A stretch of DNA of 64,000 bases, taken from the NCBI GenBank assembly GCA_029953675.1, contig JAMWBK010000009.1, forward strand, positions 372,001-436,000, written 5' to 3'. Both the position numbers and the translations under genes were made by a program. Under the pieces are notes generated by a model. The model was not told the DNA's origin and did no database searches. It saw only the letters and a list, made by a program, of their open reading frames with translations. This DNA is from Rhodosorus marinus CCMP1338 (taxonomy: Eukaryota > Plantae > Rhodophyta). Shown here piece by piece: positions 13,828 through 27,122 of this stretch; the first letter of the stretch is position 1; each line of letters begins with the position of its first letter.

Positions 13828-14436
13828 CGTCGTTGATGAACCTTGTATCACAGCAGTACAAGTTTTTGACTTCACTGAAATTACTTCTAAATAGCATCGG
13901 CCCAGCTCATCAATCAATAGCTCAATTGGAAAACGCCTCCAATCACCCTCACCGAACAAATGCTCTGTGTCCTCAGATTAATCTATTTATTTATAAAATA
14001 CATTATATATTAGACCAAGCTTGGAGGAGAAACGATTGAAAAGCAGTGGAGCAAAAGGGCAACAATAACCAAGCCAAAGAAGCTTTTCAAATGGGTATGT
14101 GCAACTGTCAAATCTCCCACGCGCTGTTCGCTTCTGCGAGACTGAGACCCGCGTTACGGGTAGCTCGCAGCATCATCCCCCAGCCATCTTGAACGGTTGT
14201 GGGTTGAGTGATCCATCATGACTTGAAGGAACCCTTCCTAGTCTCTCGCAGAAGGGTTCCATCAAGCATTGACACAAGCATAGCCAATTACCTTAGTTAA
14301 ACGGACTCTCCGTCAGTTCGCAATTCTGGTTGGGTTGTTCGCCCGCTGCGGCTGACTTTCCAAGGTCTGTAAGAACATTCTTCTGGGGCTCAGCTGCGAT
14401 CCCAAGCGATACCCGCTCCTTCGTTCGTACTCGTGG

Positions 14437-17102
14437 CTAACCAGATCTTCGAGGTCTAGACGAGCTTTTGCCCATGTCTTCCAGGCTTGAAGTTGGCGTT
14501 CTTGAAATCCTTTCCCGTCGCAATCTCACCATCGAAGGGAAGAGAATACTGAGCGGGGTGGCAGTTAACAAATTGGTGGACTTACGCACTAGCGCCGCAT
14601 CTTTAGAGTCCTGCAGGAGTGCTGCGGCCAGTGCAGCGAGAACCGCTTGGTGGTCCGTTCCCTTTGGTAGGTAGTCCAAAAGACCACCGACGTAAACCAC
14701 CAAGTTCCGTTTCGAGGATGGCATGGCATTCAACACTGTCGCGGCAGCATTTTGGCTCCCCATTTTTGCCTCTTCCTCAGAAAACGACTCTGCATCTCCG
14801 CGGCTTAGCGCAGGTTCTGGTAATTCCCTCAAGAAGGCGAGCAAGCACAACGCTGCAGCGACGTGGTCCCGAGGATGAACTTCTTCCCCCTTATCAATTT
14901 GGTCTCTGACACCGGAGAACTCCCCCCGGGTGTCCGAGTACAGTGGAAAGGGTTGTGCCGAACCCACTAATGAATTCCCAAGGAGCCAGACTTCCTTCGG
15001 TAATACTTGCGGTACGGAGGATGGGACCGGCTTGTATCGTAGAGGGCCCCAATACCACAGCAGATTCTCTAGAGAAATTCCGAAGCAACTCTTCTGGTAC
15101 GTTCCCCTAACCCGAATCGGTCCGCTCTTCGCCCCTTCGACCATCAACAAGAAGTCCGCGAATAGAGGCTCGCCTTGTAGCGTCAGTTTTTCAGCAGCGC
15201 CGTCCCTTTTCGTCACCATACCAGTTACTACCATCTGTAAGCACAAGAACAAGGCACGTTTGCAAGGTAAGTTGTGTTTTGTCCTTTCATTGTCGAGGAC
15301 AAGCCAGCTCCTTAAAACTCACATCGATGGGCTGCGCCGGTATGATCGTAGTCGGTGGAATCCTGCCGTTGATATATACAGTACACCAACTGGGGATTGC
15401 TTTCGGGTCGATGCTCACGACCGTCGCATTCCGTGCTGTGTGTGTCCCGACGAGATTCGCCTGTACACGTTTGCCATAGGTAAGCTGAGGAAAGGTACGG
15501 CTAGGTTCAGTAACACCCCTCCCTTTGGGCAACATATGATTGAAAAGTGCCCTTACCATTGGGAGCACTAAAGTTTGAGAAGTGAAGCTAATCGTGTTAT
15601 ACTCAGTGGAGTGCTCATTGCTGAGCAGAGACAAGTCGTCGAACGCCCTCTGCCCGTGAACCCAATCTCCGAGATCATCACGGAGTGACCTACGACGGGC
15701 TACGCTGCGGAGGGGATTCGTTTGGTCATCCAACTGTTGATAGAAAGGACACGTAGACAAAAACGGAAACAACCATACAACGGTCTCAATACACTTGCCC
15801 TTATTGTGCCCGACGAACTATGGCAGATGAAGCGCAGAGTTTTGAGGGCAGTAGGTACACTCACCATTCCACGGTCTCCCATTTCCGTTGGAATATCAAA
15901 GAGGGCTGAGACAGGTCGATGATCAGAAGAAAATACTTCATGTCTTCTGTACGCCAGTAACTTCACTCCAAGTCGGGACCGCCATAGGATACGATCTGTC
16001 CACGACGGGGTTCGCTTTATTCCTCCTTCCTCGTCCACTCGGTAACTGTTAGTGTCCGAGTTGTACTTGTATGTCGGAGCAAAATTTAGGCTTCCTTCCT
16101 CGAAGCCCGGTGCGACTCGGCTTGCATTCATTTCAGTTTTGAGTTGATCGTAACGGGCCAAGGTTGACCAGTCCTCTTGCTCGATCAGCTGCATGACCTA
16201 TCGTCAATGAATACAATCGACTCTTAAACGTTGAACTGTATCCGTACACGCACGCCCGCAAAGAGCGACAACTAACCTCACGAACAGGTAGGTTTATCCT
16301 GTAGTTCATGTCTCCAAGCCAAAAGACGACGTCATGGTCCAGGATATGTATGTCTCGGACGGGGTTGCCCAGGTCCTCAACGAACGTCGGCTCTACGAAC
16401 GTTGCTCGTTTCAGAATATCTTGGAAGTTCTGGTTTCGTTTAGATATGTTCTCCTCATGAGCAGCCAGGTGCGATGACACACAGCTAATGGAGATTCCTT
16501 TCACAGCGAACCTGTGCGCAATTGCCAAACAGTGTACCGAGCTTGAGAAGACGCTAGAAAACCCAGAGCTGAAGCATACAGCATTGAAGATGGCGGTGGA
16601 CTAGGAACACGAGAGAGGCGCCAAGAGTTTGCCTTCTCACCTCGCCGCTACTCCACCCTTGTTACCAACAACATTCAGAAATCCAGTTCCTGCGTCTGCT
16701 TCTAGGAGGTCATCGACCTGAACGTCCCGGTGAGCACAAATCAACAGTGCAATGCCAACCAGCTGTCGGAAGCATACCATATAGTAATCCTGTAAGCGTC
16801 AAGAGCTTGGACTGTAAGAAAAAAAGTTGTGCTTTTTCTAGATCTGCTCGATGCGCAGTTCAACAAGTCGAGAGGCGCACTGGTTTTAGAAGCTTTCGAA
16901 TAGCCTCATTCCACGCCTTGCCCTTGGCAGGATCAGTGACAACAGCCGTCATTGCTGTTAACGCCTGAGCCTCCTGGATTCCAATAATGAAAATATCTGG
17001 AGGTTGTGCTTCCATTCCATCCGGAAACAGCCATGGCTCCAGGCGAACAGAAGGCTTTTTCCCGTTCACGTTCCATGTTCCGCAAAACACTCGCAGGACC
17101 AT
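14437..17102 (-). CDS. OCRL: OCRL/INPP5B-like inositol polyphosphate 5-phosphatase (5-phosphatase, ASH and RhoGAP-like domains)
   Basis: Motifs VFCGTWNVNG, IIGIQE, SSHLAAH, VFWLGDMNYRI, FAPTYKY, TPSWTDRILW and SDHRPV. These are followed by an ASH-like region (FPQLTYG...PSWC) and a RhoGAP-like region (SCFGISLE, LLAFLRELPEP). Confidence 0.9.
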
Positions 17103-22211: not shown

Positions 22212-23602
22212 ATGGGATCAATGAGGAGCTCTTGTGGATTCTCTAGGGGAGGCAGGAGAGGTGTCGGAAAATTGGATACGCGATTGATTTGTTATGCGAA
22301 AGGGATGAATTCCCTTGGATTTATCCACGTAGGCTACCATGCGAAAATCTCGGGGCGGATGCTCTGCAAGGCGCAAATGCAGGACAAGTCAACGTCGGAC
22401 AAACCTCTGAAAATGATGCCGAAACCTGTCATCAGCTTCCCGGGTAGGATGGGAAAGATTGTAAAGGGCTACACGCTGCGCGTGATGCAATGGAACATAG
22501 ACTTTAACTCGGACAACGTTTTCTCGAGAACTTCACACCTCATCGAAATCATTGGAAAAGAAAAGTACGACCAGATTATCTGGCAGAAACCTGGTTTCAG
22601 TGGCCTCTCTGAGCTCGTACCTTTGTCTCTCGATTTAGGCCTGATGTGATATTCATGCAGGAGGTATCCGCGGTAGAAACAGGTCCTCGTGGAAGTTCGT
22701 TTCATCTGTTGAAGAGCAGACTCGTTGATACTGGCATTTACGCGTTATTCGCGGATGATTTAATCGTCGAACGACATCCGTTCTACTTTGCAATGACGCT
22801 GATAAGGAAGAGAATTCTCACGAAGGTTGACCCGGAATACATAAGGTTTCAAAGAACCAAGATGGCACGGCATCTTATTGTCTTGAGAGCCGGACTGTTG
22901 ACAGAGGTGATAAACGATGCGAAAGTCCCACTTACGTTTATTTTCTGACGAGGGTTATCTGAGCATCGTTCGTTTTTGTCTTGGTCCGTTTACCAGTCCG
23001 GCGAACACGAAGTATGCCTTTTAAACTCTCACTTCGAATCTCTGCCAAGCGGAACAGCGGATCGAATAGATCAGTTTCAAGAAGTCCTGAAGATAATGCG
23101 AAATGAGCCTCGGCCATCCGTTTTCGGAGGAGACACAAACCTTCGAGCTAGGGAGATAAGACTTGGAGATGTGAGATTGCCGGAGGAAGAAGACGTGGTT
23201 GTTCCTGAGGGCGAGTTTGACGTAAAAGTAAGCGATGCTTGGGCCCAAGCCGGTGCTGAAAGTGCTACAAAGTAAGTACCCTAGCCTAAGAGCAAAGTTT
23301 TGGGTGGGGTCTGGGATCGGACAGTTTCTGGAGGACTCAGAAAGCTTTCCCTGCGGATGCTCGTTTGTCCCCGAAGGTTCTCGTGGGATGCTAGAGTTAA
23401 TGACAACAAAGAGTGGCTTGGGGAGACGAGACCGTATGCTAGGTTTGACAGGCTTTTCTCCTCTCCAGGACGAACGCCGGATCTGTATCGCCCACGAGCC
23501 ATGTCGTATCGGTTCGTTGGGAAGAAGAGGGGACAGACCGACCAGTTTCCTTCTGATCATTTCGGACTCGTTGCAGATTACAACATGACGCTGCCTTCTT
23601 AG
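22212..23602 (+). CDS. TDP2: Tyrosyl-DNA phosphodiesterase 2-like EEP-family enzyme with an organelle-transit-like N-terminus
   Basis: The full catalytic set is present after splicing: QWNID, PDVIFMQEV, NSHFES, FGGDTNLR, SWD..VNDN, RFDRLF and FPSDHFGL. At least three introns. Confidence 0.92.
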
Positions 23603-24043
23603 ACAAGCCAGTTATGGCCATGTAAAGAAAAGCACAATCAACCTTACGCGAGAGGAAATTCCGGAGGCATGAACAATTTTGCAGTGGAGAAAAGAGGTAC
23701 GGCTATTTCCTCCTCGAGACAGATGCCAGACGTGTTTCTGGTGCAGCTTTTGCTTAGTCCTTCTAAGCTTCAGTGCGATCGTTTAGCCCTCCACTTATCT
23801 AGAAGTTATCGAGTTCGAAATGATAGAGAACAGAAGAATTTGGCGTTGCCGCTGGAAAAGTTCGACTCTGAAGTCGAGCAGTAAACCTCGCGAGTTCTAT
23901 GGGAAAGAAAAGACTCAAGTTAAGCAGAGATCAAGTGTCGAGTCCAGCGGGTAAGTAAGTAGTGCTCTCAACGAGCCGTTGAGGACAGGAAAATCCGGCC
24001 CAGGAAAGTAGTCCTTGATACCTTAGCGTCGCTGAGATGGTCT

Positions 24044-24133
24044 CCGACCAGTTTGGTTCTGATCATTTTGGACTCGTCGCAGACTACAACACGACGCTAC
24101 CTTCTTAGGTTAGGGCCATGTAAAGAAAAGCAC
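24044..24133 (+). pseudogene. Orphan duplicate of the last ~21 codons and proximal 3' UTR of the TDP2 gene
   Basis: Aligns to 23538-23635. It reads DQFGSDHFGLVADYNTTLPS* against DQFPSDHFGLVADYNMTLPS* in the gene. The UTR motif GGCCATGTAAAGAAAAGCAC is shared. Confidence 0.85.
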
Positions 24134-25189
24134 TCCTCATATAAGCTAAGCTCTGGGAATCTGGACCTTCTTCAAGTCTATCTTTTTCGAGCAAAGCATC
24201 GGAAGAACGACCCCTTCCAAAACATCGACATCGTCTCACCAAAGGATTCTCAAGTTCACAACTAAATACATTCTCGGATCGGGGCCGGCCTGACCTCAGT
24301 GCTGTTCTTTGCACAAAGTTAAAGAAACTTTGTGCACTCTAAATCAAAACATAGCAAAGAAGAACTACTAGCACGATCTTAATACGCGCATTGGTGATCA
24401 CTCTTCATCCTTCTCCGGGACCACATCCTTCACGTCCCATTTCACAAAGCGTCCCACTCAACAGCGGGATTGCAAATGCCACTCAGTTACCCGTCATGAA
24501 AGCAAACTCCATCAACAAGTAGCCGCTTGAACGGTCACGAAGAAACACCCCTCAAAATTCCCAATTTTCATAAATCCAATAATGACTGACATCGACGGTC
24601 CGCCATTCGGGAGCTTAGGCGTCTAAAATCCATTCAATTCAATTAAACACGTCTAAATCGCTTCGAATGGTCGCGGCCAGCAAAAGGGAAACGATCGGTT
24701 AAATTAATTTCATATTTTCAGTTCTAGAATAAGCTCTTGAACATATTTTTCGTAAGATCAATCTTTATTGATAGAAAAATTTGTATTTCAGAGATATCAT
24801 ATGTGAATATATTTAGTTTTAGAAAATAATCAGTCATTATATAGTGGTCTTATGGAAATAATTTATTAATCCCTTGTTTTCTAAAGACAAAAAGGACAAT
24901 TGGGAACGACGAAGAAAAGCCCTATTTGGTACGGTTGAGAAGAATGAGTTTTACCCCTAAGAATTGTCTTGGGGGAGGAATAGAGTTGGCTGTTCGATGT
25001 TACGGTCTGGTTGTTTGGGAGATGCTACAAGAAGCGACTTTGTATGCTTAATTGGTGCTGAGAGGCTGGGATCTAGATTTCTTTATTCTTGAATTTCTTG
25101 CCCGGTCCGTTTTTTGTTCGGTCGGGTGACCCTGGCGAGTTTCGAGGGTTTTGGAAGGGTTTTCTTGGTGTGTGGAGAAGAAGGGGGCC

Positions 25190-25288
25190 GGGGGGGGGGG
25201 GGGGGTGGTGGGGCCAAGGTGGGAGGGGTTGGTGGACCGAGCTCGGGAGCAAGGTGGGAGGGGTTGGTGGACCGAGCTCGGGAGCAAG
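25190..25288 (+). repeat. G16 run followed by two exact 35-bp G-rich tandem units
   Basis: G run at 25190-25205. CAAGGTGGGAGGGGTTGGTGGACCGAGCTCGGGAG occurs at 25215-25249 and 25250-25284. Confidence 0.9.
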
Positions 25289-25417
25289 AGAAGCGATCGT
25301 GTTGCAAGTGCGCCGGGCTCTTCAGCCAAGCAGCTTCTTTTTTGTCTCTAGATCGTGTTCCTGACTTATGAGAGGATAAGGATCAGGTTGTATTTTCTCT
25401 GAGTGGGCGTTAAAACG

Positions 25418-27122
25418 ATGCTCGCCGCCCTACGAACGCAGCGGCTAGGCGCTGCAAGCATGCGTAGCTGGCAAATTAATGAGCGGATAGGAGGCTGTCG
25501 CGGGAAAAAGCGACAACCTATGCAGAAGGATGGTAAACCTTCCCCTGTACGGCACACGAAACTGGGCACAACGAGGCTTTCGGCTAAGGCGGTTTCACTG
25601 ATTGAGCCGAACCCCCCAAAGAAACCGGTAGAGGTCATCGGAGAACTCCCTAAGTTCAAGAAGAATCAGCACACTAAGATCAAGTGGAGAGAGACTCCAG
25701 GCTTCGGGATGGAGTCAAAAATGCCTGAGGGTGAGAGGAAAGTAATGCGTGTTCGTAGGCTTGATATAGCCGCACTTGTCAGGGCCGCACAATGCCGCGT
25801 GATGAACTGGCAAGCGGATTACCCTTTTCGAAAGCAGGGAGTTAGGGCCGAAGGGATTTCAAGGGAAATCCTGAGAGTGCAGTATGCCCATTGCGTATCC
25901 AGATTCGATCGTCGATTTTGCAAGCGATTGCTTCACATTATGGTGCTCGATGCTAACCCCAGGCTTACTCTGTCATCATAGGCCAGACGTTGTTTTCTTG
26001 AACAACGTCTCCACAGCAAGAGATTCTAGCTCACGCCGGGACATGATGAGTGTCTTCCTTGAAAAACTCGTTGACAATGGAATCTACGAGCTCGTGTACA
26101 ACGAGCAGAGTGCCAAGGAACATCCATACGGATATCCTATCAAACTGTTCAGAAGGGACACAATGAATATCAAGAACAGTACTATTGTTGATGTCGATCC
26201 CGAAGAGGCGGTATACCATGTCGCGACTGAAACTGAGCTGAAGACTTCTGTAAGTACGGGAAATTTTAGTTTTACCTCCCTGTGTCTTGTCTTAAGCTCT
26301 TTGAAAAATCGTTTGAGCAGGGTGGTGAGGTAAATATCGGCTTCGTGACGACAAGATGGGAAGACCACATGTACGGGGGCAAACCCTTCCATCGTCACAC
26401 TGAAACTGTGTTCGAGTTGCTCGAGTCTATCTCAATGCCTTGCATTCTTGGGACGCAGAAGTTTCCTGGACGGGTATGCTACCGCATAGGTTTGGAACGT
26501 TCACGCGCTTGGCGCTTTGCGCATTCTGTCAACTTAATATATTCATGTCTTCTCCGCTTGACAGAGTTTTTCGCTTGTGCGAAATATTGCTGATGAGCAA
26601 CGGGGAGAGAATCGGAAACTATCGGATGTCTACGTTAAGGCCGGCATGCCTTTGGAATTACAGTACGTTGTGCTAGAAACGAAAAGGAAATGCTAAGCCC
26701 ATGATTGGCGCCGGTGCGATTTGAACCACGCTAAGGATTTTCTTTTAATTGTTAACATCTGCTTTAGGTATGACTATGACTCGACTGTGAACTCAAACAT
26801 CTACAGCAAGGTAAACAAAGACGGCATCGCGATGTTCAAGGCAAAAAGGAAGCGGATATCTCGGGTGTATATAGGGCCCGGGTCAAAGCCCGAAATCATG
26901 CGACCTTTGGTGAAGAACTATTTCCTAGTGGGAAAGGAGAAGGTGGAGGAGGAAGATGTGTACCCGAGCAAATACTTCGGCGTCGTCGTCGACCTGTTGG
27001 TTCCGGTAGAGGGAATGGCCACGACGTTGCAGCAGAATGAGGAGAAACCTGCTAAGAGTTCAGAATATGTCTGCGCTGTGAGGTTTCCTATTCAGAAGAA
27101 AGGCGTAGAGAATGAGTCCTAG
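25418..27122 (+). CDS. TDP2 paralog lacking the catalytic residues (EEP-fold pseudoenzyme) with a basic presequence-like N-terminus
   Basis: Colinear with the neighbouring TDP2: RVMNWQAD/RVMQWNID, PDVVFLNNVS/PDVIFMQEVS, KLVDNGIYEL/RLVDTGIYAL, LSDVYVKAG/VSDAWAQAG and YPSKYFGV/FPSDHFGL. Three intron positions and phases are shared. Confidence 0.85.

Follow-up and report, generated by a model that had tools for sequence, protein, structure and literature searches.

An expressed paralog of TDP2 without its catalytic residues, in tandem with TDP2 in the red alga Rhodosorus marinus, is probably a retained pseudoenzyme

The 64,000-nucleotide stretch analysed here, which we call the window, comes from the nuclear genome of Rhodosorus marinus CCMP1338, a red alga (contig JAMWBK010000009.1 of assembly GCA_029953675.1, which was published together with the discovery of the minicircular mitochondrial genomes of the Stylonematophyceae; Lee et al. 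2023, PMC10250338). It carries a gene of the active TDP2 type, g1, and in tandem with it a paralog, g2, in which all the catalytic motifs of the EEP superfamily are replaced. Judging from the evidence assembled below, g2 is probably a retained and expressed pseudoenzyme: a copy that arose long ago by tandem duplication of the stylonematophycean TDP2 gene, with an ortholog assigned to Bangiopsis, that has kept the EEP fold without its hydrolytic activity and that most likely works by binding.

Both genes are on the forward strand, 1.8 kb apart, where a preliminary description of the window had placed them. Their models were built from three-frame translations with canonical GT-AG introns, a rule from which none of the introns departs. 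The g2 gene (25418-27122), supported by its model, by transcripts and by homology, has five exons (25418-25881, 25982-26249, 26321-26473, 26565-26662 and 26768-27122) and encodes 445 amino acids; the public annotation of the assembly has a 445-aa gene without a Pfam hit at exactly this position. The g1 gene (22305-23602; exons 22305-22564, 22639-22906, 22997-23271 and 23377-23602) encodes 342 amino acids, and its product agrees with the NCBI protein KAJ8902152.1 (NDN08_006560) at 100% of the 342 residues that the two have in common.

TDP2, also named TTRAP or EAPII, is a Mg2+-dependent 5'-tyrosyl phosphodiesterase of the EEP superfamily and the main enzyme removing the 5'-tyrosyl protein adducts left by topoisomerase II. 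By the measure of its sequence, g1 is a genuine TDP2 with a predicted enzyme activity. Its product matches Pfam PF03372 (E 1.3e-8); 13 of 13 hits among PDB sequences are TDP2 (best E 1.9e-22); and, beyond the red-algal orthologs, its named database hits are overwhelmingly TDP2 as well. The numbering of the human catalytic domain was taken from the PDB alignment and then checked, and 37 TDP2 sequences were compared. Every residue that is invariant among them is kept in g1: N64, E95, Y136, R164, H188 and S191 correspond to human N120, E152, Y178, R206, H226 and S229, and D222, N224, W271, D292, D328 and H329 to human D262, N264, W297, D316, D350 and H351. A UBA domain was sought by Pfam and detected in neither g1, where PF03372 alone was found, nor g2. 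Many invertebrate TDP2 hits likewise have neither PF14555 nor PF22566, so that the vertebrate UBA architecture is not universal and the membership of g1 is still allowed. The ratio of nonsynonymous to synonymous divergence (dN/dS) of g1, measured against strain MMETSP0011, is 0.08-0.10.

The preliminary description had g2 aligning block by block with its neighbor, and the similarity is indeed well supported. BLASTP aligns the two products with 25% identity over 303 aa (E 2e-23), a phmmer search with g2 against 1.84 billion representative sequences recovers g1 at 3.7e-14, and hhalign matches the g2-family profile to one built from 36 TDP2 sequences at a probability of 99.1% (E 1.4e-18, 261 columns). 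With g2 as a single sequence, searches of Pfam and the PDB gave nothing useful and no Pfam domain was detected; the g2-family profile, run against solved structures, has TDP2 as its sole, weak match (E 0.015). In an AlphaFold2 model made from a TDP2-rich alignment, the predicted local distance difference test score (pLDDT) is mostly 80-98 for residues 113-410 (25754-27014, introns included), and it is below 50 for almost all of residues 1-112 (25418-25753) and for all of residues 424-445. Foldseek places TDP2 chains at ranks 1-45 for this model (TM-score on target 0.75-0.85 for catalytic-domain chains), with CNOT6L and bacterial EEP proteins ranking after them. A model made from the g2-family sequences alone is poor (pLDDT 48), and TDP2 still ranks first. 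Profile-profile and structural comparisons of the kind that the preliminary description had proposed thus both give TDP2, and neither Pfam nor solved structures nor Foldseek offers a better match to an EEP family other than TDP2. On these sequence and model comparisons, g2 is a paralog of g1 with a predicted EEP fold of the TDP2 type.

All three introns of g1 lie at the same aligned codon and in the same phase as introns 1, 2 and 4 of g2 (before PDV, before S/G-G-E and before FSWD/YDYD), the phases being 2/0/2 in g1 and 2/0/(0)/2 in g2, and exon 2 is 268 nt long in both genes. Since the introns of g1 are shared in position and phase, g2 arose by a tandem duplication at the DNA level and not as a retrocopy; the local duplication postulated in the preliminary description is borne out by these introns and by the tandem arrangement. 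That description was right about the three shared introns, but it missed a fourth intron of g2 (26474-26564, phase 0), which directly follows the degenerate GDTN region, has no counterpart in g1, and implies either an intron gain in g2 or an intron loss in g1 after the duplication. The two genes also share insertions (LVDxGxY, HP(F/Y) and a PG...RP motif) that are missing from animal TDP2.

With residue roles taken from PMC5778467 and the logic of the EEP motifs from PMC12988330, all six catalytic motifs (Asn, Glu, His, DxN, Asp and Asp-His) are found to be replaced in all four known members of the g2 family, at positions that are invariant in 36-37 of the 37 TDP2 sequences. Human N120 is Q in Rhodosorus g2 and T in Bangiopsis g2; in the same order, E152 is N and D, H226 is R and Q, S229 is D and K, D316 is S and L, D350 is K and R, and H351 is Y or H and L. 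Among the other residues compared, Y178 is G in both genera and R266 is V in both, R206 is A in Rhodosorus and R in Bangiopsis, and W297 is Y or F in Rhodosorus and Y in Bangiopsis. Mapped onto the window by way of human TDP2, the substituted codons are Q132 (25811-25813), N163 (26004-26006), R256 (26354-26356), D259 (26363-26365), S359 (26859-26861) and K396-Y397 (26970-26975), and the former GDTN region corresponds to G288-S298 (about 26450-26573). The changes WN>WQ, QE>NN, SH>TR, FDR>ISR and SDH>SKY listed in the preliminary description are all present. Its GDTN>GTQK stands as a loss of GDTN, but the exact counterpart residues depend on the alignment: D262 and N264 fall on Q290 and K291 with BLASTP and hhalign, or on R295 and S298 with MAFFT, and under neither alignment is the Asp or the Asn of GDTN retained. 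The MAFFT alignment, with R/K at D262, raised the idea of a charge reversal conserved at that site, which was dropped because BLASTP and hhalign place D262 on Q290. The change of D350 to K or R is robust, a basic residue being present in both genera. In human TDP2, activity is abolished by substitutions of D262, E152, S229 or H351 and strongly lowered by D350N (PMC5778467). With the residues that bind metal and activate water missing from all six motifs, g2 is predicted to be unable to hydrolyse phosphodiesters; by its sequence it is a pseudoenzyme as the term is defined, a clear enzyme homolog without the residues essential for catalysis.

Despite this loss g2 is expressed, correctly spliced and under purifying selection. 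The transcriptomes MMETSP0011 and MMETSP0315, both labelled R. marinus, contain fully spliced transcripts for 445-aa g2 orthologs, 90% identical in the alignment (P0001 and P0008/L002), which reproduce all four introns, the one at 26474-26564 being removed in L002. The MMETSP0011 transcript of g1 can be aligned with the window as far as about 24438, and the g2 transcripts, with a 5' untranslated region (UTR) of at least 372-377 nt, would start near 25040; g1 and g2 are transcribed separately. The open reading frame (ORF) of 445 codons is intact in three R. marinus lineages that have pairwise dS values of 0.28-0.43, and four methods give a dN/dS of 0.15-0.25. Nonsynonymous change is depleted (Fisher p <1e-22), differences fall on the three codon positions in a ratio of roughly 1:1:3-4, and the introns and UTRs are 71-80% identical between strains. 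The dN/dS is about 0.16 in the EEP-like domain and 0.14-0.34 in the N-terminal extension, and it is lowest (0.08-0.11) in the strongly constrained, Rhodosorus-specific C-terminal tail (residues about 411-445; 27015-27119). Although g2 evolves about twice as fast as TDP2, it is clearly constrained. The preliminary description had judged it maintained rather than decaying and had suggested checks of splicing, of dN/dS and of orthologs; the fully spliced transcripts of two other strains, a dN/dS of about 0.2 and the intact orthologs all agree with that judgement. Isoforms of g2 that keep intron 1, 2 or 4, each with a premature stop, were also assembled from both MMETSP strains (P0002, P0003, P0004, P0006; L001, L003); they could be the product of either incomplete splicing or regulated retention.

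The family extends to a second genus. A HMMER scan of the 1.84 billion representatives found a complete MMETSP ORF of 363 aa (P0113, E 1.3e-48) that is intact and expressed, has 34% identity across g2 residues 103-411, and is dead at the same positions as Rhodosorus g2, with different replacing residues. A JGI twin of this ORF (P0117) was recovered from sample 3300016877, which also holds the TDP2 of Bangiopsis sp. CCMP1999 (P0012/P0111; 63% identical to g1), and on the strength of this shared sample we assign P0113 to Bangiopsis. A neighbor-joining tree groups the four g2 sequences into one clade and the two algal TDP2 sequences into another, each with a bootstrap of 100%, which puts the duplication before the split between Rhodosorus and Bangiopsis. 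The tree itself does not place the g2 branch, the monophyly of g1 plus g2 receiving a bootstrap of 17%; it is on account of the shared introns, the tandem position and the shared insertions, and not of the tree, that we argue for a derivation of g2 from the algal TDP2. Neither a word-indexed single-sequence search, nor the HMMER scan of representatives, nor the g2-family profile gave any relative of g2 beyond these two genera, and hence none outside the Stylonematophyceae. A metagenome scan with g2-family peptide patterns found nothing, and the one hit (L008) to a degenerate pattern, FGVxx[DE]LLVPVE, is a chance match inside an unrelated ORF of 616 aa.

A comparison of the two genera reveals where the constraint on g2 now lies. 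In stretches around the catalytic motifs, Rhodosorus and Bangiopsis g2 match at only 5/15, 5/15 and 3/15 positions, against 14/15, 12/14 and 11/14 for the TDP2 proteins of the same two genera. The best-conserved segments of g2 are residues 113-127 (RVRRxDI...AAxxR), 308-322 (RKLSDxxVKxG), 353-382 (KRxR...GPG...RPLV) and 398-412 (FGV...LLVPVE); conservation has moved from the active-site motifs to other parts of the protein. In TDP2 the DNA cleft is made up of a beta-2-helix-beta grasp (W297, L305, I307, F315), a cap and a floor (PMC5778467). The grasp is partly kept in g2, with Y/F at W297, D298, an N-x-N and a hydrophobic I at L305, and it contains a Lys/Arg-rich insertion of roughly 7-9 residues (SKVNKDGIAMFKAKRKR in Rhodosorus, HSTKRYNLKYSKRAR in Bangiopsis). 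By composition and pLDDT, residues 1-112 of Rhodosorus g2 are a basic extension, predicted to be disordered, with an isoelectric point of 11.4 and 28 K+R against 9 D+E.

The preservation of g2 since before the divergence of the two genera means that the TDP2 fold must have a selectable use other than catalysis. We suggest that g2 would act by binding instead of cutting, and that its ligand would most likely be a nucleic-acid end or a protein-linked end sitting in the former substrate cleft. The partly retained grasp with its Lys/Arg insertion, the Lys or Arg at D350 and the basic, disordered N-terminal tail are the reasons for thinking that g2 probably binds nucleic acid. Several observations weigh against this interpretation. 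The whole g2 family is defined by four sequences from two genera. The cap (H226, S229, R231) and floor (D262, N264, R266>V) residues of TDP2 are lost, so that the cleft may not bind DNA in the way that TDP2 does. The basic N-terminal and the C-terminal tails of Rhodosorus g2 are not common to Bangiopsis, in which the N-terminal extension is much shorter and the C-terminal tail absent. The high-confidence model, because of its TDP2-rich alignment, leans towards the TDP2 fold, and a test of the N-termini for a helical hydrophobic moment (amphipathicity) was not significant against shuffled sequences.

A rather unlikely, but possible, alternative is that g2 works chiefly by contacting other proteins, serving as a partner, regulator or decoy for the adjacent TDP2 or for the protein ligands of that enzyme (a topoisomerase II adduct, SUMO or ubiquitin-like marks). 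The preliminary description had itself suggested an organellar site, nucleic-acid binding and a partner or decoy role, and all three are hypotheses. The g2 segments with the highest conservation lie away from the former active site, as would be expected of a new interaction surface, the tandem with TDP2 has been kept in Rhodosorus since before the Bangiopsis split, both paralogs are retained in both genera, and the TDP2 catalytic domain does bind SUMO2 (PDB 5tvq). However, TDP2 is described as a monomer in the structural literature that we reviewed, with no known heterodimer, the transcripts of g1 and g2 are separate, and a polyanion ligand would better suit the Lys/Arg-rich insertion in the grasp and the basic residue in place of D350.

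That g2 could be a neofunctionalised enzyme, with a new set of catalytic residues and a different reaction, is very unlikely. Such an enzyme would be under purifying selection, as g2 is, and the family does have invariant polar residues of its own (for example K200, H202, R308, R312-K313, E370 and R373); moreover Bangiopsis g2 is acidic at E152 (D114) and possibly has an Asp at N264. Nevertheless, the variation between genera at the former catalytic positions (Q/T, N/D, R/Q, D/K, S/L, Y/H/L) speaks against new chemistry in that pocket and for a constraint that has been relaxed rather than re-purposed; no constellation of His, Asp or Glu is conserved there, and g2 matches no other Pfam family or solved enzyme. 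Finally, a decaying pseudogene or an artefact of gene prediction, which the lack of a Pfam domain, the mere 25% identity to g1 and the intron-retention isoforms might bring to mind, is scarcely credible in the face of ORFs that are intact in three diverged strains and in another genus, transcripts with all four introns removed, and a dN/dS of about 0.2 (p <1e-22) against 71-80% identity in introns and UTRs, and is already contradicted by these data.

The extreme N-termini raise the question of where in the cell the two proteins might act. In both genera the first 21-32 residues of g1 and g2 contain no Asp or Glu and abound in Arg, Ser, Thr, Ala and Leu; in Rhodosorus g2 the first 21 residues are without an acidic residue and resemble a presequence. 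Such N-termini in two genera hint, if faintly, at a possible organellar location of g2, to which the hydrophobic-moment test lends no weight. The start of g1 was put at 22305 in this analysis, and not at 22212 as in the preliminary description: the ortholog transcribed in MMETSP0011 has a stop 7 codons ahead of the MNSL methionine (compare 22212-22304 in the window), and the upstream frame is not conserved as coding. With that frame broken, and MNSL(G/S)F providing the first usable methionine there, the likely start of g1 is the one at 22305 (MNSLGF) that the NCBI model also uses. The active TDP2 proteins of Rhodosorus and Bangiopsis (P0010 and P0012; 22305-22450 in the window) have acid-free first 26-30 residues, no UBA and a Phe at position 5-6 (MNSLGF..., MPVAF...). 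Phe-bearing N-termini of this sort presumably resemble the organelle-targeting peptides of red algae, and the active TDP2 may itself be organellar.

One could go further and imagine that the TDP2 and its dead paralog form an organelle-targeted module, specific to the Stylonematophyceae, for their minicircular mitochondrial genomes (PMC10250338), although we hold this to be distinctly unlikely. In such a module the active TDP2 would strip 5'-protein adducts (a trapped type II topoisomerase or the tyrosine linkage of a replication initiator) off the minicircle DNA, and the dead paralog would recognise, protect or hand over the 5' ends. If this were so, g2 would be a pseudoenzyme serving as a "reader" of 5' termini that bear a linked protein or a phosphate. 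The paper on the R. marinus genome mentions neither TDP2 nor topoisomerases (PMC10250338).

As regards known systems, g2 resembles TDP2 in its homology across the whole catalytic domain, in that its closest solved folds are all TDP2, and in the introns and insertions that it shares with the neighboring g1. It departs from TDP2 in the replacement of the six motifs, the loss of the cap and floor of the cleft, the basic grasp insertion, the long basic N-terminal extension and the C-terminal tail that is conserved in Rhodosorus. The two zebrafish genes tdp2a and tdp2b are both reportedly treated as active enzymes, unlike the g1/g2 pair. Those two genes are comparable to g1 and g2 as a lineage-specific duplication of TDP2 (PMC11369425). 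Human TDP2S, a short isoform found in mitochondria, has the TDP2 catalytic domain behind a cleavable mitochondrial targeting sequence that replaces the region of the UBA and the nuclear localisation signal (PMC6628236). Like it, g1 and g2 have no UBA, and they start with acid-free, presequence-like residues; unlike it, they form a pair of genes of which one is dead, and their targeting is putative.

Perhaps the most instructive comparison is with EEPD1, whose EEP domain clamps DNA rather than cleaving it and has a protective role (Shen et al., NAR 2026, PMC12988330). If our proposal for g2 is correct, both proteins would be cases of an EEP fold that lost catalysis in the course of evolution and was retained to hold DNA. 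EEPD1, however, has been deprived of a single motif residue, the Asn of DXN, with the other motifs kept; it carries (HhH)2 domains at its N-terminus, dimerises through a Trp handshake and is essentially metazoan (PMC12988330). By contrast g2 belongs to the TDP2 branch, has lost all the motifs, has no HhH detectable by Pfam, has an N-terminus that is predicted to be disordered, and is known from the Stylonematophyceae only. By analogy, then, g2 is comparable in kind to the EEPD1 DNA clamp, and is not a member of that group. It would join EEPD1 as a second case in which an EEP nuclease fold has been put to a non-cutting use, and it is an experiment of nature that can show which functions, such as recognising ends, sensing adducts or regulating the active enzyme, are left to a TDP2 scaffold deprived of its chemistry. 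The preliminary description knew of no described TDP2 pseudoenzyme, and in the literature that we searched we likewise found no catalytically dead member of the TDP2 family; nor, apart from the EEPD1 study, did the full-text searches bring up a paper linking TDP2 to red algae. The importance of this TDP2-derived EEP pseudoenzyme is moderate, as its lineage is narrow, four sequences are known, and its function is one that we infer.

The surroundings of the two genes have some features of their own. A relic duplicate of the 3' end of g1 (24044-24133, forward strand, about 90 nt, 89-96% identity), also found by tblastn, lies in the g1 3' UTR or intergenic region, 506 nt downstream of the original, and comprises the last 21 codons of g1, the stop codon and the first 25 nt of the 3' UTR. 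The MMETSP0011 transcript of g1 shows nothing collinear with it, which makes it look like a recent, strain-specific micro-duplication. Just upstream of g2, at 25185-25279, a long G-run precedes a 35-nt G-rich unit that is present as two copies in tandem; the element matches the region of the g2 5' UTR, and the MMETSP0315 transcript apparently (by eye) has one copy of the unit. This element could fold into a G-quadruplex or serve in regulation. Some 5 kb upstream of the TDP2 gene and on the opposite strand (about 14313-17102), a gene for a 707-aa protein with Pfam PF22669 (Exo_endo_phos2) brings a second, unrelated branch of the EEP superfamily into the same neighborhood. Lastly, CCMP1338, MMETSP0011 and MMETSP0315 are all named Rhodosorus marinus, but their dS of 0.24-0.43 in g1 and g2, together with the low identity of their introns and UTRs, suggests that the three cultures are cryptic species rather than strains.

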